64,000 nucleotides of DNA. Source: Convolutriloba macropyga (lineage: Eukaryota). The notes beneath the pieces are model-generated. The model was not told the DNA's origin and did no database searches. It saw only the letters and a list, made by a program, of their open reading frames with translations. Numbering within the stretch: the stretch's first letter is position 1; every line of letters begins with the position of its first letter. Below, one piece after another: positions 7,001 through 43,000 of this stretch. The translations under genes were made by a program, and so were the position numbers. Where the stretch lies: assembly GCF_964194025.1 (NCBI RefSeq), contig NC_134472.1:62496001-62560000 (forward strand), in the 5' to 3' direction.

Positions 7001-10000
7001 ACACTGCCGGAAAATAGCCAACTTTGACCACCCACTGACCGACGTTGGAATTAAAAAAGCTGCGAGGTTTCTAAGTTTTAACCCAGGTTGCCCACCTTAG
7101 ACGAAACTTTAAAACTTATTTCTTACTAGGACTTATAAGGTGCCTATTAGAAAATCGATACAACGTTGCTAAAAAAAGAATTTTAGTGCAGGCCAGTAAG
7201 CCAAGGGTAAAAACAACAGCTGACTTTAGTTTGGGGTTTGGGACTGTTTTGTTCACTCTCAATTTTTTATAGATTACTGTGAACCCAAATTTATCAAAAA
7301 ATTGAGCAAAACAGCTATCTCGTAAAAAGTATGCGAATGGATTTTTATTTCGTTGGCGTTTTCAGTCCTGCGAAAACAGTTTTATTGGCAGTTAATAACC
7401 AGTTTTCAAATTTGGCGTTCTTCATCTATGGCTATGTTCACTTTGTAGCCGAATAATTTTTGGAGTGTTATCTCACTTGAACAAAGTACAACTATTTGGT
7501 TAAATGCTTTCATGGCTTTAGTTGAAGCTCATAGACCTTAATTATGTTTTTACTGCATTTGCACGCCATCTTTTCTTTTTCCAGTTTTTTTTTCAACTCC
7601 TCTCATTGGGTAAGTCAAAGAGAAATAGTTATTGGACCACTGTCCCCTCTTATTTGGTGGCAAATAACTGGAGCTCTGATTGCTATTATCCTACAAGACT
7701 GATTGTGAAGTTACTATTTTTTAAATTTATTTAATTCATTCTTTAATTTTTTTAAAATTATTTATACTACCAGGGTGCAGCTGAGTGAAGTTGTGATGGG
7801 CTGTTGTGTTCTCATGGTGAGCAGAAGAAGTGGGATTGTGGTTGAGGTTGAGAGATGACCTGCAGAACTTCTTCCCAATGTTGTTGGGAGGGGGTTTGCC
7901 TGTCAGTGACATCGAGTGACCATTGTTGGAACTGTGAGTATGGTTCTGATTATGATGACCACTATTGTTGGTGCCTGACTTGTGGCCCTTTCGACCTCTA
8001 ATTGAGGGAATACGCTCGATCAAGTTGCCCCCTGTCAACTTCCTATAATAGATTGTTCAGATTACAAACTATTTGAGAAATCTATTGACGCCATTCCAAC
8101 AAAAACAAAGAAATTGTTGTGCCAACTCCAGTCGAGACGTAGACTTATGGAAAGACCGTCCACTCTATAATATTAGCTATGAAAGGACTACTCGGCAGAT
8201 ATTTGTTATGGAAAGGACCCTTGAAAATAACATAATATTGGGAAAGTTTGTCAAATACTAATCGGTGATTTGCAGGAAATTGTGTAGCTTTGCAGTAGGT
8301 GACAATGTTCTAAGATTTTAAAAGATAAAAAGCGTCAATCTGTTGATACGATGACGAAAATTTACTACTCCACGGCCTTTTTCGGCAAAATTTTTGCTGT
8401 CCGGTCGGAACTGGACAGCAAAATTTAATTCGAGATAACGTCCAGCAGCACTTCGAAATCATTTATGAAGCTGTGCAATCAAATATAAGCCTGTGATGAT
8501 TTTGGACGTTTGTGCTTACCTTGAGAGTGGGTTAGTGGCTGAGCCGAAGAATATGTTGTTAGTGATTGAGTTTTGGTTGTTGTGTTGTGCAGATGGGGAG
8601 AATGATGAGGAGTGGTGGGTGGGGGGAGGGGTGACTACATGGATAGTCCATGTGGCCACTGACAAGGACTCCTCCCCTGCTGCGTAACATCTCCACACAC
8701 ACTATAACAATAGTTAGCCAGTAACCAACCTGAATTACAGCTACTTATCAAAAGGTTCCAGTCCACTGATATTGTATATGAACAGACCTTTCATCAACCC
8801 CAGCTTGACCCAAAAGGGTGCGGTTGACTATGCTTTTACAAATTGGCGTCGCGAACTTCTCAAATTGGCGACATCTCGAATTGGAGAAAGCTTTTTTAAA
8901 AATAAGGTGTATATGGGAGTTGTTTATACCAAACAAAAATTGAGTCGGAAACAGTATCAAGTTTCAGTGTCTCTATTAAGTGTCAAAAGTTTTCTTTCAA
9001 ATTTTTGTTTAAAATAGAAGCATTTTCTTCATAATATTGATTAGCAATTGGGTCAGGATCATATTCAGGGAGAATCGAAGAACAGATTGAAGTTCTCCTA
9101 TATATGTGGATTTCTAAACAACAAGACTATTTAATTCAGACTAGGTTACTCAAATATTTGAAGAATGAGGAAAATTGCGCATCGTCATTATGAAAAACAA
9201 TATTATGACAGAATCTTAAAAGAGGATGCATCATCTTACAATATTTTCTGACAGAACCTAACAAGATAAACCTTCGTGGTACAAGAATCTTACAAGAGGG
9301 CCATTCGCTTTACAAGATCTTTTCTTGTAACGCAGTGAAGTTTACTCTATATCCAATTTGTTCTTCAAAAGAAACTCAATTGTGCTTTTTAACTTCTATT
9401 TCAACGAGAAAGTCTCTTAAAAGGTCACAAAAACAATTATTGTTATTAGAACTTCAATTGTTGTAGCAAAAAGGCCTTCTCAAGACTCTCAATAAGTTCG
9501 GTGACAAATGATTTTGGTTTCCGTCACTTTTTGTGCTTTCGTGACGTGATACTCCGAGGGTACTGATGCCTTTTCAGACGCTAAGAAGCAGTATTGAGTT
9601 GAGACTCCAATTTGTTGAAAATGACAATATATATTTTAAGAGGGATGACAAATCTAAGACAAAAAAATTGATTGCAAAAAAATATCGGCATAAGCAGAGA
9701 ACAAGTCGGTCAAAATATTTGTTCATACCTTAAAGTGGAGATGTTCTGCCCCACAAGTAAGTGACAGAACAAGAGTCTATGATAAAAAACAGGACGATCA
9801 AAAAACATATTGCTCTTTTGTTTCTCAGATAGTTTAGGAAATTTACAAATTCATTTTTGATCAGATGCTGTTTAATTCTTTGGTAAGAACAACAAGCATT
9901 TTATGTCTTTCCTAGTTGAATAGAAACCAAGTTTTAATTTACTTTTGAGTTTACAGATAACGACAAACCTACGAAGGAGCTTACCAGAAGGCTTCGCAAA

Positions 10001-28000: not shown

Positions 28001-31000
28001 AAAGCGAATTCGACAAGTCAAAGACAAGTCTTAATAGACACATTTCACACGAATAAAAAACAACAACACGGCATGGAAAAAACCGAAAACTTTTGCAACT
28101 ATTTCTCAAACTAAACCATTATTATGCCATATCTGAAAATTAATCTGCAATTAGCTGAGATTCTGACATCAACTTAAGCGCGGTTAAATCGAGAACAGCA
28201 TAGCTGTTCAAAATTTTAACCAATTTTTAGAGTTACTTCTGAAGACTCACGTAAAACGTGATGTCAAAGTCTCTACCACAGGTCAAAAGAATTCAACAAC
28301 TTGAATTTGAAACTCAAATTGGAAAAGAAAATCTAAAAAATTTGGCTCATTTTTATAGTACTTATCTGTGGGGAAAAATAAAAAATAATTCACTTGATTG
28401 GTATGTGAATCAATTTCGGTTCCAGATCCCGGATGTGATTTTCTAAATTTGTTATTTTTCATGAGAAATATGCATGGCCATAGTACAATTGAGTTCAGCC
28501 CTTTAAAGGCAAAAAAAATTTAACTTTTGATATCAGATTGATTGATCAATAGAAAAATGATAGTGCCAGAAACAAAATTACATATAGAATAAATTTTTGT
28601 GCCCCGTACTTATCGACCCAGCCTTAGAGCTAATCAGGCGAGTTATTATTTCGCTTTGTGACACTTCAAAAAACAGAAAACTTCCTTGTTTTTCTATAAT
28701 ATCACAAACTATCACATAGTTGCTTCAATCTTCATCACTGGTGGTTCAGTTTTTCTTATTTCTTTTTTGTAGTCGTCCCGCAATATGATAGTCGTTCACT
28801 ATATAAAATGCCCAGTCACTTCCAGGCGTCAAAAGTTACCGGAACAGTCGCTGTCTTTTCATCTGTCTTCAACAAAATGAGTTAACACAAATGGAAAAAG
28901 TCGGTAGTTTCACTCTGCGTCCTTGTAGTAATTCGACAGCCAGGAGGTTCCCCTCTCGTTTTTAAAGTGTTGCGAAATGTCGTCAGTGCCCTCTGCAAGA
29001 AGGCTCCAGAGAAAACGTTAATGTTAGGACTCCACGCATGAGGTACCTTCTTGTCTGTGTGAATTTTTCACTCAGCTATTCCATTAGCTCTTCGATGATA
29101 CACTGGTGATTTCGTTTTTCTAATTCCCGTACAAGACACCACTGTTATAGATCACTAATTATAAAAGATCATAAAAACACCACTGTTATAGATCACTAAA
29201 GCAACTAATAATAAACTCGTAACTGTTGTCAGATAATAAGTTCTGAGGTTTCCAAAATCTTGCACGGATTTTACTACGATATAGTTTGACGGTTTCAGAT
29301 GTCATGTTTTCAGCGGGATGGCATTTATCCAGCCTGAGCGCGAGTCAACAATTACTAAGACAAAACATTGGTCGTTAATGAAACCTCACTCTATTTGGAG
29401 AGGTCCTCCATCATTAAATTGTGGCCATGTGAAGACTGTTTTTTGTCAGACTACACCTCGGCATCTGGCAGTTCTTACATGTAATTACAGAATCGTGAAC
29501 CTCATGGATGATGGGATTCTCATATAATTTGTTTCTTTTTGTCGAACAGTAAAATTTCAAGAAATTTTATGTTGGTTAGTTGTAAGAAATTTTTGATCTC
29601 ATAAATCAACCATCCCGTTTCGACCCGGGTATGTTTAGAAACATCTATTATTAAACTTTCGAGACACAGAAATTACGTGCCAAACGAAAGTGGGAAAAGC
29701 GGTTTATAAAGCGCAGCATTAATGCAGCAGTTGTCATGTGGTATCATTTTGTGATGATGCTGATGATTTAATGTAGATTCAGTGTTCTGACTAAAATTGT
29801 TCACAGTCTGACCTAGGAATGTGAATGGTTGTTTTATGAATCTGAGTCTGCCCAGAAGTGTCTGGAACCTGCTTCTGCATCCAGCACTCCACACTCTCAA
29901 TACCAAATCCACACTGAAGATCACTATCAACACTATCTCCTATAGACAAACAACAAGTGAGATTTATTTTATTACATTATAACTGATTATATATTACATT
30001 CAAAGATTAATTATATTAAAATGAAATTGGCGTTGCCCTAGTCTAAGCCTGGACTTATGAAAACACTCAAACAGTTGAGCAAAAAGCTAGCATAATTTTT
30101 TTGGGTCGAGCAAAATACCATGTGGTTAGTAATGTCAAAGGGAGGGGGATATAATGTGCAAGACCCAACTGAATAGGGGTTTTAATAGGGTATAGGTTGC
30201 ATAAAATTGATCATCGTTTCGATAAATCGAAAGATGCAAATTGAAAAAAAGTATTGTTAAGATTTTAAAAAATAAAGTTTCAGGGTTTTATTCTTCTTAA
30301 AGAATCGATTGCACCTAAGCCCAGTTGAGAGCAAAGACGTGGATTTTAGTAACAAAATGTGGAATTTAATTACACCCACTGTGGAGTTCAGGTACCGTAG
30401 TTACCGGATTTGTTAATCAAATTCAGTTTTTGATAAGAACGTATTTCAGCAAAAATTGGGAAATTAATTTTTGAGGGATTTCGGTCTGCAAAGGATGTAG
30501 CCTGAATTCCGCCCTTGAACGTAACCAAATTCCGCGAGTGCAAAGTCAACCAATATCATTTTAGGTCTGCCTTAATGTTTTAATGCTAAATTAATTTAAC
30601 TGAAAGTAATTTGGAGTTTCCGCGCTCTTGTCCCAGGTGGAAGAGTCTTTCTTCAATTAAATTAGCGCTGTTTTGTTCACGTGAGTAAGCAAATTGTTTT
30701 AATATATGAGGAGAAAACAAGATTGTTTTATTTCTAAAAATACCCAGCTCAACTCATTAAACTGGGCTTTAGACGTGAACTTTTCTGCCGCAGAAATTTG
30801 CAGCAGCAAAGCAAAAACAGGCCAAGATGAAAAGCAATATACGAAACAAAGTTTTTAGAAGTCTGATAAATCCGTTTGCACAATAAAATAATGTTTTGAC
30901 AGTTCTCAATAAACTGCGGAAACAAAGGGCATCTGATGAGAAATGTCATCGGACGTCCAGTTCGAGCTATTAACTCTATGCTAAAAAGAGAAGTTCGGAA

Positions 31001-34000
31001 GATTCAATGCAGATAATATATATAAACTCCGAAACGTACAAATCAACAACGTATAAGCATTCAGCGTTCAATTCGACAACGTATTAGTATTATAACGTAC
31101 ATAGCAACAAGTGAGAGTTTAGACGGCAAGGTTTTTGATGCTCTTTTACTGGTTTTTTGTCTGATGTTTTTTGACGTCAGAATCGGTTCATAGTCGATCA
31201 ACAATCGTCTAAAGAACCTAAAAATATTAAGCCGAAAACCGCCTTATTCGATACATATCATTGTATTATTTACTTAAAATTAGGTTATACGAACTTTTCC
31301 GGAACCTTTTGTGTATATTAGACGCAATTCTATACGTAATTTAAATACTCGATTCTGATTGGCTAAGAAAAATGACGCATTTTGTTATATTTCTCGCTTA
31401 GATTTATTTAGTTACTAACATCCTCCGGCCCAGAAGAAGATGCTGGGAGAATGGGTACTAATTTTACAAGCGGGCGAACGAGCGATCCGGTAGACGTGCG
31501 CAGGACGGCGGAGCGCGCGACGCTGTCGGAACCGTAACGGAGTTCAGTAATCCGAGCAGTGGGGTAGTAACCCCTTGGGTTGGTCTCTTCAACTACCCAT
31601 ACCAAATCACCGGTCTTTAGGTCAAGCTCGGCAGGCGTCTGCCACTTGGAACGTCGGTTCAGCGCTGGTACGTACTCTCTGATCCAACGAGACCATATAG
31701 CGTTAGCGTAAGACTGCGCGCGGGCGTAACGCTTACGATGATCAAACTCATCTACACCAATGATGGAAGGAAGACTACGTGCTTGGTTACCGAGGAGAAA
31801 GTGATTAGGTGTTAATGCGCCTAGGTCGGACGGGTCGGCACTTACGGGCGTTAGCGGACGTGAATTAAGTGCATGTTTGACCAGACAAAAAGTGGTACTT
31901 AAAATCTCATCTGTGAGGCGACGCGTTCCAAGGATTGTGTAAAGTACGCGCTTGAAACTACATACTAGCCTCTCCCAGATGCCACCTTGGTGTGGCGCAC
32001 TGGGCGGATTGAACCTCCACTTAATGCCTTTGTGGGCAAGTTCGACGGCGATGTTGATGGTATTCCACTTCTCGATATTCTCGCGTAGTTCTTTTTCCGC
32101 GCCAACAAAGTTAGTGCCATTGTCTGACCAATTGATGGCAGGTGTACCTCGACGGGAGACAAAACGCTCCACTCCCATTACACACGAACTGGCGTCCATG
32201 GAAGGAACAATTTCGACATGAACGGCACGAGTAGTTAAGCATGTGAAGAGGAAACCCCACCTCTTCTCGGTAGTCCTACGTACAGTAACATAAAACGGGC
32301 CGAAGTAGTCGACCCCGGTGTTCGTGAAGGGAGGAGACTGGTATGCGAATCTTTCTACTGGGAGGTCAGCCATAATGGGTTGAATAGTGGCAGCGCGGAA
32401 CATTCTGCACGTGACGCAATTGGATTTAATTGAACGCAGTGAGGATCGTAACTTAAGGATGGTATAACGTTCTTGCATTTTAGCCCTCAGGTAGTCAATA
32501 CCTTGATGATGATGTTTAACGTGGGTGTGCCTGAGGAACAACTTTACAAATGCATGGCGTGCGTCAAGAACGATAGGATGTTTTACATCAAAGTCAACTT
32601 CGACCAACCGTTTGATGCGGCCGGCCGATCGGATTAGACGATTTGGCCCAATAAAAGGAGATAACGGAGCAATGCGGCTACTCCGTTTAACGGGTTTGTT
32701 TTTGAGGAGAATTTTTCTCTCTGCATTGAATGACCCCCCTTGCACAAGATACTGGAGATGACGCTCGGCTTCGTCAAGCTCCGTGGGGTCTATGATGCTA
32801 CCATCGGCATTACGGTAACATTCGTGAGAAGATAACAAGCGGAGTGCGTACGCTGTTATCCGTAGCAACTTCTGATAAGAACTGTACTTATCAAGGGGAT
32901 TAGTTGCGGGGGTGGTTCCTTAGTTGACTTGGTTACAGATGCGGCCAATGATGTATTGGTTTCCTCAGTTTCCTTAGTTACTATACCAAGTTTGATATTT
33001 TTAACTACTTCGATTTTTGGTTCGAACGGGAATTCATTGGTTCTTAAGAAATCTGGACACCTCACCCAGCTACTTGATTCCAAACCCTCAGCGGACATAC
33101 CACGAGTACCGGCATCTGCTGGATTATCGCTTGAGGCAACGTGGTTCCATTCGTCAACGCTAGTGTGTTCTAAAATCTCGCATACGCGGTTTGCAACAAA
33201 TATTGGCTGCTTGTTTGTGGAGTTGAGCCACTGCAAGACAGTAGTGCTGTCAGTCCACATATAAACTTTGTTGACATGCACAGTAAGGGCTCGACAGATA
33301 TCTTGTTTCAACCGAGCGGCCAGTAAAGCAGCATGCAGCTCTAGCTTTGGAATTGTCATCACCTTCATAGGTGCTACGCGAGCTTTACCCAGGACAAATG
33401 CAAGCTCTGTTTTTGGCCCACTAGACGTGTTTGCCTGAGCTCGGAGAAATGCAACAGCGCTGAAGTCCTCTTGGGAACTATCGCCAAATATGTGTAGTTC
33501 CAGGTGTTTAAAGTTTCCCGAAAAGTAGCTCCTCGGTTTAGTGATTTTTGCAAGCTTGGGTAGTTCTACACTCCATTCGAGGAAACTTTCAACAGTGTCT
33601 TTTGGTAATTCTTCATCCCAGTGCTGCCTGCTGACACGCCAGATGTCCTTTAGTAACAATCGGGCACCAACAGTAAATGGTGCCACTAGGCCGATGGGAT
33701 CAAACACCTTAGACACTAGGCTCAATACCAAGCGTTGTGTTAAAGACTTAGGTACTGTACCCAAGGTACCCCGACTCACAACTAGAGTATCATTGTTGTG
33801 ATCCCATTTCAACCCAAGCACGTGCGAAGAATCCTCCTTAGATGAGGCAATTAATTTTGGTTCGGTAGACTGAGTTGACCCATCAATTCGATCAGCCAGA
33901 TTTGGTACGTTGCTTACAAACTTAGTAAGCTTGAACCCACCTAGATGGAGAAGATGTACCAACTCCTTCGGTCTTTTGAGAGCCCTCTCAGGTGACTCCA

Positions 34001-37000
34001 CCGAATCCAAGTAATCGTCCATGTAGAAGTTTTCTAGGACGGCTTTGGTTGCTTCCGGGTACTGATTAACATTGTCTCGGGCCGTGCGTTGCAGTGCATA
34101 GTTAGCGCATGTGGGCGAGTCTTTAGCCCCGAATATATGGCGCGTGTATTGATACACTACAACATTTGTTGTGGGGTCCTCCAGCCACAAAAAACGCAGT
34201 GATGGCTGGTCCCAATCAGGGACACCCACTTGGAGGAACATACCCTCGATATCTGCGGACACGGCAAATTGATGTTGACGGAACCTAAGTAGTACATGGA
34301 TTAGGTTTTGGAGCAGGTCGGGGCCAGTGAGCAAAGATTTATTCAAAGAAGTACCGTGAAATTTTGCTGCACCGTTTATAACCCTACGCACTTTCCCCGG
34401 TTTGTTCGGGTTGATTACGGGATGATGTGGTAGGTACCACTCTTTATCTGACCACTGCTCGACCTTGTGAGCATCAGGGACTGTAATCAAGTAACCTTTT
34501 TCCAAGTCTTCACGGATGGTATTAGCATAATTTTCTTTCAATGATGTAGCCCTCGAGAGCCGCTCTTCGAGAGATTTGAGCTGTACCAGTGATGAAAAGT
34601 AGTTATTCGGGAGCTGGACGTTGTCATCAGCCCATAACATACCGACATCGTATCTTTGGCCGTCATGGAAAGTTGTTGTTTCTAGTATTTCCTGCGCGCG
34701 AGCATCCGCTGCGGATCGTGGGTCAACTTGCTTGAACGCGCCGTACGATTCCATATCATGCCAAGATTTAACCTGACAAGCTAATTCAAAATCCTGTTCA
34801 ATATTGGTTTTGAAACACGTCGACACTAAACTTGAACTTGACGGGAGTGGGCCACTTAAAACCCAACCTATGGGTAAGCGGACAGCGAACGGTGGGCACT
34901 TTTCGTCGGCTGAAAAATACTCTAACGGGCGGATGGCATGGTAGACATCCTGTCCAAGTATCATCTTAATTTCTCCATAGCTATATCTTACTGGATCTAG
35001 AACTGCCAAATGTGGGTAAGTTTCTTGCATGGACTTGACGTCAATGATGCCGGAACCTACGTTTAATGTTTCCCTCACGTAGGGACGCACAGTGAATGCT
35101 ACGAAGTCTTGGTCTTTATGAGGTGTCACAGTCAATTGAACCACCTTTGTGTCTATGAGTTCTTCCGTGTTTATACCCTTGACGGTCAGTTTTAATGCAG
35201 TACCCTGCAAACCGAGTCTAGCTGCGAGACTATCGGACACCCAAGAGTTACTGCAAGCGGTATCGCATAAAACCAACGCCGTAGTACTAGTGCCAGAAGA
35301 ATAAGAAAGCTTCAGTTCCGTGACCTGAAGGAGGCCTTTAACATCCGTCACGGATGACAAAGTGGTTGTTTTGCTTGGTTGCTGTTGACCCGTAGATGGC
35401 CTACTTGTACCTGCGTTCGACTTCGAAGTATCGATGTTCTTGTTTGTTGAGGGCTAAGCTGGAAAAACCCTTTCAGCTCCATGAAGTAAGGTGTTATGGG
35501 AGCTGTTGCAACCATCTTTCCTACATTTACGGGGACCTGGGCATTGCCTAAACATGTGTTTATCACGCAAACAAGAGAAACAGAGCTTTGCATCAGCCAC
35601 GACCTTGGCTCTCTGCGTGGGGGTCTTTTCCTTAAAGACACGGCATTCCCACAACCGGTGGCTGCCTTTGCATACAATGCAACTAGAGATTGATGTTGAC
35701 GGAGATCTCTGTTGCGGCTTAGGGTTACTCTTCTGTTGCGTATTTGCAGCAAATGCCTTTGAAGCAACTTTTGATCTTGTTACTGAGTTGTTGGTATCCT
35801 CAGTCCTTGCTTTAGTTGCGGTATTCTTCATTAAATCGTGCGCTTCGGCCTTCTCTTTTAACCAATCGTTGAAATCAAGAAGAGTAGGTTTCACCCAATG
35901 CTTTTTGACCGTGAAGAGTGACCATGACTCCTTCATATTGGGTGGTAGCTTCTGTACGGCAGTGTTGAGAAGCGCAGCACTCTTTAAATCCGAATCATAT
36001 GACACCGATTTAAATACCCCGACAAGACTTGAAATGCACCCCGAGTAGTTAATGATGTTATCGCTATTGTGCATCTTCAGTGGTGGAAAGCTGTTGAGTT
36101 TGTCCAAATGTGCACTTACAACCGCCTGTGGTTGGCCAAATTTACGTTCTAAGGTCCTCAGTGCGTTTTTTGACATTGCGCCGCAGTAGGCGAACTCAGC
36201 TATAGCTGTTTTAGCTTTACCTGTTACGAGGTTCTTAAGGTATGTCAATTTTACATCATCAGTTAAGGACTGAGAGTCAATTGCGCTTTTAAACTGACCA
36301 TACCATTCGTGCCACTGTAGAGGATACCCACTGTATTGTGACAATTTCCATTCGGGTAGTGGGTCATTCCTCTTGCTAGATAAGGCGTCAGTGAATGCCT
36401 TAATCAAGCTTGCATTTTCAGATGGTGGCGTTGGAGCGTGGGATGCGGTGGGCCACTCCAACACAATGGTATCGGAGCAGTATGCCCGTATGTTGGATGT
36501 ATAACCGGCGTGACGAAAGGTGGCGCGATGTTAGTAGTTGTACTAAAGGGGTTAACAGGGATGCTACAGTTAGCTGCGTAGTTGCTATTTGGATTATGTT
36601 GTGCACTCATTTGCAAGGTGGCATGGCTGATAGCAGGGTTAGCTGTGCTTGGGGGTAGGTACGGTTGAACATTTTTGAAGATGGTAGCATTATTTGTCGC
36701 CTGGTTTACATTTGGGGGCTTATCCTGAGGAAAACTCCACAAGTTTAGATCAAGGTTACAGTTCAGGGGAGATTTTTGTGCTGTAGGACACGGTACCAGG
36801 CGGGTTTGAGGCGATTGGACAAAGTTTTGCTGTTGAATGTTTGGGACTGGTAGGTATGTTGCTGTGCTCGCTGGGATGGGCAACGGAATCACGGGAGGCT
36901 GAGGATTAAATAATTGTTGAGGCGGGATTACGGGAGTTGGGTTCAAGAGTGGGTTTAGAGGTGGAGGGACCTTATGCGGGGAATGGGCAATAGGGATTTG

Positions 37001-40000
37001 TGTTTGGTGTGTAATGTTACTTTGAGGTGGATTCAGTTGTTGCGGATTATGAGGCTTCGACATATGTAATTGACAAGGTACAGTGGAGCTTTTTGGACCC
37101 AAGAACTGATTTACCTGTGGGTTTGCTGAAAAATCAGGTACAAAAATGAAGTTCGTTGGTGCCATAACGGGTGTCGGTGGCCGAGGAGGTTGCATAGGTG
37201 GTTGAGGTGGTGGGAGTGCGACATTTTGTCCGTCGATTGGTACTTGGTTCACGTCACCACTGCCTGAGGGACTATGTGCCCTTTGATCAATGAGTGATTG
37301 CTGCAGTTGAGCCTGGCGATATTCCCGATACAAAGCTTCCTGCTGGGCAACAGAAATTGCAACTCTTGGCCGTGTGTACTGAGAAAGCATTTCAAGATGA
37401 TTTAAGTTATCGGCAACATTACTTGGGTTTTCTGGAGGATTACTAGGGGAAGTATCTTTAACAGGAGGGTCGGCGGTTGCTGAACCAGGACGAGAAAAGT
37501 TTAACTCACTTGAATTACCTGCTGGAAACGAATTTACCCAATCCTGAACAAGTCCCTGACTTCTATCTGATCCCCTATCTTTAAACAAATTCAGTTCACT
37601 TGAGCGTAGACTAAACAATGAGTGATTATCCATTAAATCAGCCTCATCTAATTTAGCTGCTGCAACACGCTGGCGGTGGTCTTCCTCCAATTCTTGAAGT
37701 GCCATCTGTTCCATTTGTATTTCAAGCTCCTTTTTTCTCATGGCAATTTCGTGTTTTTGTTTAGCGAGGCGCATGGCAGCTTGTTCTTGTTTCTCGGCCT
37801 CTTCGCGTTTTAGTTTTGCCATGAGAAATTCATGTTTACGCTGGCTAGACATTGTTGATGTTGTTCGGCGTGAACTTCTCTTAGATTGGCCTTGAGGATT
37901 AACGCCCTCACATACGGTGTCTCGGTCAGAAACTGAGTCAATATAGCTTCTAGCCGCAAGCAAGAATTTATCATTGTTCTTGGTTTAATCATCCAACCAT
38001 TGCTCAAGGACAGGGTAAATTGAATCTGGGTTCTCCGCTTTACTGGCTAAGTCAAATAGTTCTTCATTCTTCTGCACTAGTTTACTGAAAACATCCTTCA
38101 AGTTAGAATCCAAGCGTTCAACTTTAACCCTCCTGTCTTGACGATCTATGGCATCTGTGATGTCCATATGGATGTTACATAACTCAGATTCGAGATTAGA
38201 TCTTGCCCTAAAGAGCTTTTTCAATTTTTCTTGCTGTTCGGCCATGATATTGAAATGGCTAATTTATCAATGTAGAGTAACTTCCAACCAAACACGTGGA
38301 ATGAGGGTTATACCGAACCCAAACGACGATGACTTGATAATCAAGACGTCGAAGAGCAGAAAAGAAGTTACCGAGTGATGAATTAATCGGCCAAAGTGAG
38401 TAACAAAGTGGAGAGGGCGTCTAACGTGCTTGAAAGCAACGTGAGACAAAACAGGAATACATGCAACCGGGGAAAGAGGACTGGATGGAAGAAGCACGAC
38501 GAAACGGGAAACGAAGCGGACGGGGCGGAAAGGATGGGCGAACGGCTTGCAACGCAGCAGGGAACGGAATGGAACTGGAGAAAACGCGGGTAGTAAACGG
38601 GTAACGCAACGGACGGGACGGAAACGCTGAACGAGCGACGCACGAAGAAACGGGAAACGAGACGGACAGAACGTAGGGGTTGAGCGAGTAGCGCGCAACG
38701 AAACGGAAATACGGAAAGGAACGGGCGGGAGACGATTAAGCAACGAGCGGGGAGGTCGGGAAGTACTATGCTAGCAGACTACAGCAACAAACTCAACCAA
38801 ACAAACTAGACGTAACTCCAGAATAAACTTAAATCACACCCTAGGAAGGAGGAGAGATGCTACTGCAAGAGGCAAACTAGCACAAGTCATTATGGGGCTT
38901 AATATATACAAATAACGAACTAATTTACCACAAAGCAATAGTATACTAAATGGATGAAAAGAGCAACGAATTTACTAGCCGTAACTCCAGAATAAACTTA
39001 AGTCACACCCTAGCATTAATCAAACCTAAACAACCAATCAGCATACCAATAATATTAAACAAACTACAGCAAAAGTTAATTAATATGCAGCGCTTTTGTA
39101 GTCTATGAAGGCTGGGAAAGTGAAGAAACAATCTAGCCAAAACTCCAGAATAAACTTAAGTCACACCCTAGAAGGCAACAAACCAAACCAACTAACAATC
39201 ATACAGTTACACGCAAACATACAGCAGCAAAAACTAATATACTACAACAGGGGGGCTAGTAAATTAGTAAAGTTGAAAAAGTCCAGGACAATCCAGCCAT
39301 AACTCGAGAATAAACTTAAGTCACACCCTAGAAAGCTATAAGACCTAAACAACAAACCAGCATACTAGCATACTCAACTTACTACAGCAAAAGCAACAAC
39401 ATACTTCATCACATATGACATACTTCATCGAAAATCGGAAAAGTAGCGAAGAAAACGAAAAGCGAAGTTTTGGGAGAGCGACGTTATTGGAAAAAAACGG
39501 AACACGGAGAATTGGAAAGATAAAGAACGAAAAGAACGCGGACGAAAAACGGTATATAAACGAGCGACGAGAAAAATTATGGGAATTCGATAGTTTTTGT
39601 AGGCCGGAGGTTGTGAAAATTTTCACAACTTTTTCTGTGTAATAAGTTTCACTCAATTAACGAACCTTCTTGCTGGAATTATTTTTTTTTGACAAATTTG
39701 TCAAAATTTGATGCATTTGTCCAATTTTTCCAAATTTTGGTCAATTTTTTGCAAATTTTTGATTACGGAACGGTAATCCAGTAAAATGGATGGTTTTAAG
39801 CTTGAATATACGGTTTATCATTATTCGGTATTGATTTTCTAAAGTTTTCAGAATTGCATCAAAATTGACCAAAATTTTTCAAAATTGAACAATTTAGCAT
39901 AATGTTTTCTCGGTTTTCTCTATATCAGAGGTAATTTTTTGATATACGATCCCACTTAATCACATTTTACAAATTTTCGACAATTCGACCAAAAGTTTTT

Positions 40001-43000
40001 CGAAATCGATGTTTTTTCGTCTCAAAAATTATGTTTGTGCGGTTATTGGTGACGGACTATCTTTATCGATGAGCTAATCCGGTATTAATAATAAGGTATT
40101 ACATTCCTTTTAGGGGTTGGAGTTTGCCGTCTAAATTTAAAAGTTTAGCTAATGCAATAACGAGTTTAGTTCATGTGTGTTTTGTTTCTGTCTTACAGTT
40201 TTTTGCATCCACTCAATTTTGATTGTATGCATCTCCATCGACTGGGCTCAGTTTTTTCTCAACATCGGTGTTCTGGGAGAAGCTGGCACCTGGCCCCTCG
40301 AATCGCACATGAAATGGGAAACAGCTTCCCGATTAACCAGAACCCATGTTGTTTCGGCAGAGCACAAATTCTTTTTTGCTTCACCCACATGAGCGGTAGT
40401 AATCTCAACATTATCAGTAGGGTTTGAGTTCCCTACAGAGTCAGAGGACCAAAAGTAACAGCTCAAATAACTTAGCATTGTGTGTAATAGGAATAATTTT
40501 GTTAGGCAGAATGAAATATTGAATATTTTCTGATCAACTGCTTCGACGCTCGCCAAGTCAGATGTAGTTTGATGTACTTAGCCGGGAGCGGCACTAATAT
40601 TAACTCTGCTAAAAACAGAAGTTCGGAAGATTCAATGCAGACAATATATATAAACTCCGAAACGTACAAATCAACAACGTATAAGCATTAAGCGTTCAAT
40701 TCGACAACGTATTAGTATTATAACGTACATAGCAACAAGTGAGAGTTTAGACGGCAAGGTTTTTGATGCTCTTTTACTGGTTTTTTGTCTGATGTTTTTT
40801 GACGTCAGAATCGGTTCATAGTCGATCAACAATCGTCTAAAGAACCTAAAAATATTAAGCCGAAAACCGCCTTATTTGATACATATCATTGTATTATTTA
40901 CTTAAAATTAGGTTATACGAACTTTTCCGGAACCTTTTGTGTATATTAGACGCAATTCTATACGTAATTTAAATACTCGATTCTGATTGGCTAAGAAAAA
41001 TGACGCATTTTGGTATATTTCTTGCTTAGATTTATTTAGTTACTAACACGAGCCCCATTGAAGCCAAGAGACCATTCTTAACCGTTTTTGCAAACAAAAA
41101 ATAGCCAAGAATAACCGACATCCTGAACAATATAGTCAAAATCTTGAACAATTGAAAAATGACAACTTATTGCAGAATTTTTTCATGGACCTTTCGTCAT
41201 ACAGACTGTTGTTGTTTTCTTTTGGTATCTTGAATATCATGAAAAGAAGTTGCACAAAAATTTGCCCTCCATGGATGCAACTTTTATATTCTTGAATATT
41301 ATATCTATGACGAGTCGGAATCAAATAGCGAGTCGGAATCAAAATTTTTCTGGAATCAAATATCTCCAGACCGAAGATCATGAACGCACAAGGGGGGCGG
41401 CGCGCGTAATTAGTTACTCTGGAAATATCGAAAAACGCTCGAAAGTCTGAACATAAGCATTTTTGGTCTAGCAGTGTCTGGGTGTCCGTCTGGCACCGCA
41501 ACCAGTTCACGGCTCCACAGTGTATTCTAAAACTTTTATTCAATCTGTGTTAGTGGTGGGGATAAACAAATTATCATTCTGGAAGTTGATAAGCACACTT
41601 TAGAAAGCGCAATTGATCAATGGTTGAAAAAAATGGTGTCTCACCAATTTGTGTAGAATTTTGTTGGCCTCTTCAGAGAAACTTGTTGGTTCGTCGCTTG
41701 CATTGTCCATTTCACCATAATCAGAATTGATTTGTGTATATAGTTGTTCACGGTCATCAGGCACTTCCAACTCCCCCTCCTCGTCAAAGTTAGACTCAGA
41801 TTTGGACACTACAATTTACATACCAAATAAGGAAAGAGCTGGCACGAACCATGAAATTTGATCTCGAATTTTGCTTTCTGTAAATTTCATGGATGATAAA
41901 CTTTCATCTTGCAAGAACGCAAGAAAAAAACCGTTTTGCAAAAATTATTCAATTTCCTGCGAGATAGTCTAAAACTAACGCTTAGAATAATTATTTTTTT
42001 CTACAATATGTAAACTGGAAAGTCAAAGTTTTTTTTCAGAATAAATGGCTGATTCTTTTTATTCTCTATTTGATATATCATTTTTCTCTCTATCATCAAC
42101 AAAAAATATCTCCCGCAGCCCATCATCCCTGCTTAGTCTAGTTTTGTATGCTTCAAAACTAAAGTTTACTAAGCATACTTATGAATGATGCTATTGCTGT
42201 CATCATTGAAAACCAATCCTTATAGAAGCATGTAAACATATAAAAACATGTAAACATATATCACCAAATATTATAGTTATTACCTGTTCCCTGAGAAGGT
42301 TTGAGAGAGGGGTATGATTGCGATGATGCAGGCGTAGTTGGACTGATGCTGCTGATTTTTGTTGTCAATGTTGTTTTCAGCTGTTGTTGTTTGTTTTTCT
42401 GGAGGTGTTGTTTGTTTTCTCTTCTTTCCACCTCGGCTGAGCTGATCACACTCAGCAGCAGACAGATGAAGATTAGGGCAAATCTAAAATATCCAGACTA
42501 TAACAAATTGAACCCGTATCAAGTTCAAACCACATTTATTACAGACCACTAATCAGAATTTCAATTGTCCGAATTGAGATCCAGATCCTATTAGCTCCAG
42601 AACAATCACCTCTCCCGTCCCGTGCGCTATAAGAGGCTCTGATCAGATGATCCAAGCAAATTTGCTCCATTTTATAGCCTGATTCTATAAAATTTTTCTA
42701 CACACAAGGATAAATTTGAACTTCTTGGAATTCATTAATAGCCGCCGCCAGCCTCTCAAAGGATATTATTTAGGCGCTCTCCTTTTTGGCGCTCTCCTTT
42801 TTTACAATTCAAAGAGTTTGAATTGTATTGTATTGGTGCGCTGTCTTTTTTACGACTCGAAGAGGAGTTATGGTGATCTATTTTTTTAAATTCTTAATCG
42901 ATCCAGTTGTTCTAAATAAGGATGTAAAAGTCAATGTCGCACGTGCAAAAAATGTGGTTTTCCTTTGCTGCTTAACAAAAATGTCAAGTGAAGAGAAAAG

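Follow-up and report, generated by a model that had tools for sequence, protein, structure and literature searches.

Why would a retrotransposon keep four short sequence blocks nearly unchanged in its leader while the DNA between them drifts? The question is raised by a 64,000-nucleotide (nt) stretch of the genome of the acoel Convolutriloba macropyga (assembly GCF_964194025.1, contig NC_134472.1, positions 62,496,001 to 62,560,000, forward strand), here called the window, to whose first letter all coordinates without a further label refer. An earlier prediction made from the letters alone (the original prediction) described at this locus an array of conserved RNA hairpins in the leader of a BEL/Pao retrotransposon. 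Comparison of the array with other copies in the same genome indicates that a 39-nt core in each unit is under purifying selection, and the pattern of variants within the core mildly favors a hairpin formed by the sense-strand RNA. The array may be a cis-acting module of the genomic RNA of the element; this tentative reading is weighed below against a role in the DNA and against weaker alternatives.

Four conserved cores in a degenerate tandem repeat

The array contains four 46-nt blocks (38799-38844, 38968-39013, 39126-39171, and 39286-39331), which are 83 to 89% identical to a reference copy and are spaced, start to start, by 169, 158, and 160 nt with rising coordinate (160, 158, and 169 nt in sense order), as predicted. 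Within the blocks lie 39-nt CTAG...CTAG cores that match each other pairwise at 34 to 37 of 39 positions (87 to 95% identity). The 31-nt sub-cores that had drawn attention to the locus are indeed near-identical, each being at most 1 nt away from the commonest form, and the CTAGCC-like sequence described in front of them reads CTAGAC, CTAGCC, CTAGCC, and CCAGCC on the plus strand. The parts of the array are as follows.

39293-39331, minus strand: hairpin core A (first in sense order), in which position 26 is C and positions 2 and 38 form a U.G pair
39133-39171, minus strand: hairpin core B, in which a change private to the window copy weakens the stem
38975-39013, minus strand: hairpin core C, which matches the commonest genomic form exactly
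38806-38844, minus strand: hairpin core D (fourth in sense order)
39332-39470, minus strand: partial fifth unit with homology to spacers A and B, spacer-like and lacking a core
39352-39391, minus strand: secondary conserved boxes, TTGCTGTAGT and GTATGCTGG in the sense orientation, recurring at 39212-39231, 39052-39073, and 38772-38791

The spacers are far more diverged than the cores, as had been noted, with 50 to 62% identity among themselves; the accompanying statement that they share mere scraps does not hold, since the partial upstream unit and spacers A and B align at 60 to 62% identity (z-scores of 3.7 to 6.5 against shuffled sequences). In spacers C and D, identity has fallen to ~52%, the level of random sequence. 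BLAST self-hits of 70 to 73% across ~262 nt are consistent with homology of the units, and together with the aligning spacers they argue for descent of the units from a ~160-nt tandem duplication. To judge from these alignments, the array is an old duplication of this kind in which the core alone has been kept in each unit. Tandem Repeats Finder did not report the array, because its units are too diverged. An ordinary ~160-bp satellite or minisatellite was rejected, in line with the original prediction; the divergence of cores and spacers is strongly unequal, and the arrays have four units. The secondary boxes are weaker than the cores and carry few shared (lineage) variants, and G+U-rich runs, likewise with few lineage variants, also recur in the spacers, which on the sense strand have 44 to 48% U and are low in A and C.

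The array lies in the leader of a complete BEL/Pao element

The host of the array is a complete BEL/Pao long terminal repeat (LTR) retrotransposon on the minus strand, bounded by target site duplications (TSDs). Both the superfamily and the position of the array in the leader agree with what had been proposed. ORF, open reading frame, and RT, reverse transcriptase, are used in the list.

30963-30967, no strand: TSD CGAGC, low side, the same 5 bases at both ends of the element
30968-31420, minus strand: 3' LTR of the BEL/Pao element, a direct repeat of the 5' LTR
31408-37963, minus strand: coding region, with ORF1, gag, protease, RT, and integrase in order
35541-35681, minus strand: two CCHC-type zinc knuckles in Gag (nucleocapsid-like)
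37856-40597, minus strand: 5' leader (untranslated), ~2.7 kb, with 39 ATG triplets
40598-41048, minus strand: 5' LTR
41049-41053, no strand: TSD CGAGC, high side

The LTRs are 451 to 453 nt long and ~99% identical, differing by ~5 substitutions and one 2-nt indel. The assignment to BEL/Pao follows from the paired LTRs with a short TSD and from the gene order, with a Pao-type aspartic peptidase, RT, integrase-DUF5641, and DUF1759-Gag. A Pfam scan found DUF1759 (Gag), Peptidase_A17, RVT_1, an integrase zinc-binding domain, and DUF5641 in the expected order (E-values of 2e-38 for PF05380, 5e-21 for PF18701, and 1e-14 for PF03564; the match to PF00078 is weak). ORF1 encodes a coiled coil and a P/Q-rich part, and gag encodes DUF1759 and the two CCHC knuckles. 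The ~2.7-kb leader has no long ORF; four full units and the partial one occupy the part ~1.1 to 1.8 kb downstream of the 5' LTR, and the cores themselves begin ~1.3 kb 3' of this LTR and extend to ~1.8 kb. In the window copy the coding region is broken into four overlapping frames, whereas other copies have a single uninterrupted frame of ~2,285 to 2,311 amino acids (aa), so that the family looks recently active and the window copy is a broken one.

Copy number and conservation of the array

A 32-nt core pattern, searched with up to 3 mismatches, gave 4,417 matches in the 1.18-Gb assembly and none with the reversed pattern as a control; chance is therefore excluded, and the repeat belongs to a very abundant family. 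These ~4,400 cores amount to roughly 1,100 arrays genome-wide. The expectation that other copies would carry the array was borne out: four cores with the same spacing are found in all of the 30 nearest copies (30/30), the layout is the same in a second set of 30 copies from a different subfamily, and exactly four cores are present in 55 of the 63 sampled arrays. With this number essentially fixed at four, the repeat does not vary as is typical of tandem-repeat modules in 5' untranslated regions (UTRs). Each array with two or three cores was represented by a single copy. The two-core array L034 was considered as a subfamily with fewer units and rejected, being one deleted copy, and in the DNA contigs of four sequencing runs the array is present, with joints that skip one or two units being rare and of very low depth.

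In subfamilies whose coding DNA is only 72 to 74% identical to that of the window copy, the four cores persist with 1 to 3 changes per core, at distances of 160, 159 to 160, and 168 to 170 nt (158 to 171 nt across subfamilies overall). Between subfamilies the leader module is 82 to 83% identical, compared with 72 to 74% for the coding region, and orthologous spacers are 64 to 92% identical. The core is absent from the families at 62 to 67% Pol identity (L033, L035, and L036), so that the array, among the families compared, is limited to a clade with Pol identity of 69% or more. Two of the families at 62 to 67% have other tandem repeats at the same leader position. The leader arrays in L033 (4357-6507) and L036 (6105-8031) are of 41 bp x 27, 26 to 27 bp x 12 to 32, and 81 bp x 11. 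Contigs of the ENA assembly ERZ25071359 were tried as a cross-species comparison and rejected, as they come from the same genome, with one locus 100% identical. A RefSeq protein of C. macropyga matches the genome at 97 to 99%, compared with 59 to 64% for a protein of Symsagittifera roscoffensis.

Purifying selection on the cores

Selection on the cores, which had been proposed from their similarity within the window, was assessed in 55 aligned four-core arrays. Variants found in one copy (private) represent mostly decay after insertion, and those found in two or more copies (shared) were mostly inherited through propagation. Private variants are nearly as dense in the cores as in the spacers (0.44 versus 0.52 per column, not significant), from which it follows that mutation input is similar in both. 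Shared variants, in contrast, are 2.6 times rarer in the cores (0.205 versus 0.526 per column, p = 2e-13), and pairwise diversity is 0.027 in cores versus 0.065 in spacers. The depletion of shared variants at nearly equal private density indicates that the cores are under purifying selection. Conversion between units has also left a trace, in that unit 2 has two linked unit-1 variants (positions 26 and 38) in about half of the copies.

As a separate observation, among single core changes genome-wide the transversions C>A and G>T occur at about the frequency of the transitions C>T and G>A; at position 12 there are 25 C>A and 25 C>T, and at position 29 there are 18 G>T and 19 G>A.

The core is predicted to fold on the sense strand

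The hairpin that had been described on the sense strand of the element does form in folding predictions. The sense-strand core folds into 14 base pairs, including 3 or 4 G.U pairs, below a UUU(A/G)UU apical loop, with an energy of -10 to -15 kcal/mol (z-scores of -1.5 to -3.7), and the antisense-strand core gives no hairpin fold. When the whole 770-nt array is folded, cores with an intact stem pair with a probability of ~0.9, which applies to three of four cores in the window copy, four of four in L031, and two of four in L032.

The shared variants spare the stem: per column, they number 0.125 at paired positions versus 0.41 at unpaired positions of the core (p = 3e-4). Variation between lineages falls on positions 5, 6, 21, and 26, for each of which the fold predicts no partner, and on 38, at which U-A alternates with U.G. 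Pairing is kept by 9 of 14 shared stem variants versus 14 of 51 private ones (p = 0.024). There are also three isolated double changes that restore a pair, namely, U-A to C-G at 2-38, A-U to G-C at 16-25, and G-C to A-U at 17-24. This variant pattern mildly favors a hairpin in the sense-strand RNA as the constrained form of the core.

What the array may do

We infer from this pattern that the constraint acts on the RNA, and the array would accordingly be a selected cis-acting module of the genomic RNA of the retrotransposon, a reading that we hold at somewhat short of an even chance. The sense-only fold, the shared variants sparing the stems, the pair-keeping stem variants, and the three pair-restoring double changes are all counted for it. 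So are the position of the array upstream of a gag whose product has two CCHC knuckles, the U content of the spacers, and the persistence of four equally spaced cores in the subfamilies at 72 to 74% identity, with unit-loss variants occurring as single copies. In this scheme, an old ~160-nt tandem duplication would have left four 39-nt stem-loops on U-rich, weakly structured linkers, and the hairpins would form a multivalent binding platform. The likeliest ligand would be Gag of the element itself, through its nucleocapsid part with two CCHC knuckles, and its binding may lead to selective packaging or dimerization of the full-length RNA. Put in this specific form, as a multivalent packaging and dimerization signal of BEL/Pao that is read by the two-knuckle nucleocapsid of Gag, the proposal is doubtful; as a second option at the RNA level, a host RNA-binding protein could use the hairpins for export, translation, or stability.

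Several results weigh against an RNA-level role. The fold z-scores are modest, and when transitions only are considered, pairing is kept by 9 of 10 shared versus 14 of 26 private variants, with p = 0.06. The covariation that the original prediction had proposed as a check is not significant at this shallow divergence: among 98 distinct cores there are 3 double changes versus 1.1 in shuffles (3 or more in 42 of 500). Because the array is restricted to elements with Pol identity of 69% or more, its copies have diverged too little for covariation to show. Genome-wide double mutants give no signal either, being pair-compatible in 5 of 8 cases versus ~43% by chance (all three at pair 8-33, two of five at pair 12-29). 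Apart from 5, 6, 21, and 26, the bases of the loop and bulges vary as little as the stems do; it follows that a reader of the core reads sequence as well as shape, and this fits a sequence-specific DNA site equally well. A search of 37800-41100 against Rfam, on both strands and with E-values up to 1, gave no match. Finally, the leader repeats of other BEL/Pao families in the same genome are unrelated and have no consistent hairpin per unit; per-unit hairpins as a general trait of BEL-family leader repeats were rejected on this inconsistency.

The serious and main rival places the function in the DNA, with the cores as four phased sites for a host protein, about one nucleosome repeat apart, in an enhancer, insulator, or chromatin-targeting module. 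We consider it possible, if on the unlikely side. It has a precedent in the 5' UTRs of Drosophila melanogaster LTR retrotransposons, 39% of which are tandemly repeated and some of which are insulators or enhancers or bind HP1 (PMC8872304, PMC5408687, PMC3286476). It would also suit the conservation of the core as primary sequence, most loop bases included, and the holding of the spacing at 158 to 171 nt across subfamilies; the different multimerized leader repeats of the other BEL/Pao families in this genome are what fast-turnover regulatory sites would be expected to give. An 8-bp palindrome, ACTTAAGT, lies within the core, but in 39 nt one is expected by chance about 1 time in 8. What a duplex site does not predict is that the variable positions are the predicted unpaired ones and that shared stem variants tend to keep pairing, and the strong strand asymmetry of the module, G+U-rich in the sense direction, would be meaningless for a double-stranded site.

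Improbable, by comparison with a role in RNA or DNA, is that the array has no function and is a decaying tandem duplication whose cores were homogenized by gene conversion or by template switching of reverse transcriptase between units. The units do come from one duplication, at least one conversion-like event is seen in the linked variants of unit 2, and rare unit deletions exist. Conversion alone, though, cannot explain a shared-variant depletion that is three times stronger at stem than at unpaired positions of the same 39 nt, and such a history leaves unexplained why deletion variants were never amplified and why the leader module is better conserved between subfamilies than the coding region. 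A processing array, in which the hairpins would be cleavage signals that release spacer small RNAs, as the original prediction had suggested among other roles, or precursors or targets of small RNAs, has the repeat-spacer look in its favor and is very improbable: orthologous spacers are conserved between subfamilies and three spacers are mutually homologous, unlike a freely variable payload, which led us to reject a CRISPR-like or spacer-release reading, and the 39-nt hairpin is too short for a precursor microRNA, a reading that was rejected on its length.

Mosaic structure and other features of the elements

Other features of the leader in the window are listed here.

38400-38760, minus strand: second leader repeat block with units of ~46 to 53 nt, CpG-rich and, in the sense orientation, rich in pyrimidines (9% A)
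39688-39892, no strand: AT-rich stretch, with 10-bp periodic repeats (TTTGTCAAA-like) and 32-nt inverted repeats
40054-40597, minus strand: LTR-proximal leader segment, a mosaic module that is non-homologous between subfamilies

The second repeat block adjoins the array on its downstream side in the leader, and in the related copy L034 the corresponding repeat is 46 nt x 4 (8506-8687). The inverted repeats of the AT-rich stretch are 88% complementary and 112 nt apart.

Between subfamilies there is no homology in the final ~90 nt of the LTR, in the adjoining ~550 nt of the leader, or in the ORF1 region (40054-40700 and 36404-37963 in the window, compared with L031, L032, and L034), while the array-bearing leader is common to them at 82 to 83%; the elements are therefore mosaics. 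In the window, the frame 5' of gag (36404-37963) encodes 519 aa, with a coiled coil in the N-terminal part followed by a long tail rich in P and Q, and it has no Pfam match. The ORF1 frame is joined in frame to Gag-Pol in intact copies, and L034 has no ORF1 at all. In the sequencing contigs, the summed depth of the subfamily-specific leader segment 40164-40646 is 100 to 700, compared with 45,000 to 560,000 for the array, so that no other part of the element is shared nearly as widely.

The array-bearing segment or the whole element also occurs in head-to-tail repeats with periods of ~1.7, 2.4, 3.1, and 4.0 kb, at C18:34284-37443 (L024 and L025), C9:49807802-49810096 (L045 and L046), C7:33577210-33583518, and C9:20037987-20045924. 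The repeats share private core variants, which argues for segmental duplication after insertion.

Implications

Few LTR retroelements of animals are as abundant as BEL/Pao elements, and we know of no cis-acting RNA signal in any of them. The family described here is highly successful, with ~1,100 arrays and, in many copies, a frame of ~2,290 aa that is still unbroken. Its 39-nt element is sharply delimited and under demonstrable selection, and natural variants that break the stem or restore a pair are present in the genome; a direct test of RNA-level versus DNA-level function is therefore feasible for a representative of the 5' UTR repeats that are widespread in LTR retrotransposons. If the packaging or dimerization reading is true, the BEL/Pao superfamily would gain its first defined cis-acting RNA signal, and one built by tandem duplication. 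If it is a DNA regulatory module, the insulator and enhancer class of insects would extend to acoels.

Comparison with known systems

Packaging signals made of several hairpins offer one comparison; retroviral psi consists of stem-loops, and the alphavirus signal comprises 4 to 6 repeated stem-loops with a conserved loop motif. The array resembles them in having several similar predicted stem-loops with a conserved motif in the putative genomic RNA, and the Gag of the element has CCHC knuckles. As with those signals, the reader of the array would be a capsid or nucleocapsid protein. Unlike them, the array has no sequence or Rfam relation to these signals, and its hairpins lie 120 to 130 nt apart and are not clustered.

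Satellite DNA seeded by tandem repeats within retrotransposons (PMC7004042, PMC3648361) offers another comparison, as the ~160-nt unit has a length typical for satellite DNA and the LTR element carries the repeat outside its translated part. Unlike such satellites, the repeat was not seen in long arrays (at most eight cores per locus in our sample, which are two arrays side by side), and divergence along the monomer is strongly uneven.

The closest likeness is to the leader modules of insect LTR retrotransposons. Tandem repeats occur in the 5' UTR of 19 of 49 D. melanogaster families, some of them insulators, enhancers, or HP1-binding (PMC8872304); the unit is 307 bp long in ZAM, with 2.3 copies, and 102 bp in Tirant, with two to six (PMC5408687), 5' UTR repeats have been noted in mosquito elements too (PMC3286476), and roo, a member of the BEL group, is depicted with a 5' UTR that has two blocks of tandem repeats (bioRxiv 10.1101/2022.09.05.505575). 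Since 5' UTR repeats are common and roo is a precedent, a leader with tandem repeats is not a new architecture, BEL/Pao included, and the statement in the original prediction that it had not been described for BEL/Pao leaders was too strong. Like the gypsy Su(Hw) insulator and the modules of ZAM, Tirant, Idefix, and roo, the array is situated between the 5' LTR and gag and keeps a short motif in each unit (PMC8872304, PMC5408687, bioRxiv 10.1101/2022.09.05.505575); like them, it is family specific, with rapid turnover between related families. Unlike those modules, whose unit number is variable and which are understood as protein-binding sites in the DNA, the present repeat is old and degenerate, with 39 nt kept per 160-nt unit, its number is essentially fixed at four, and its constraint follows a sense-strand hairpin. 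What is new here is thus a sharply delimited 39-nt core within an old degenerate repeat, present in an essentially fixed number of four and with a constraint that follows the hairpin.

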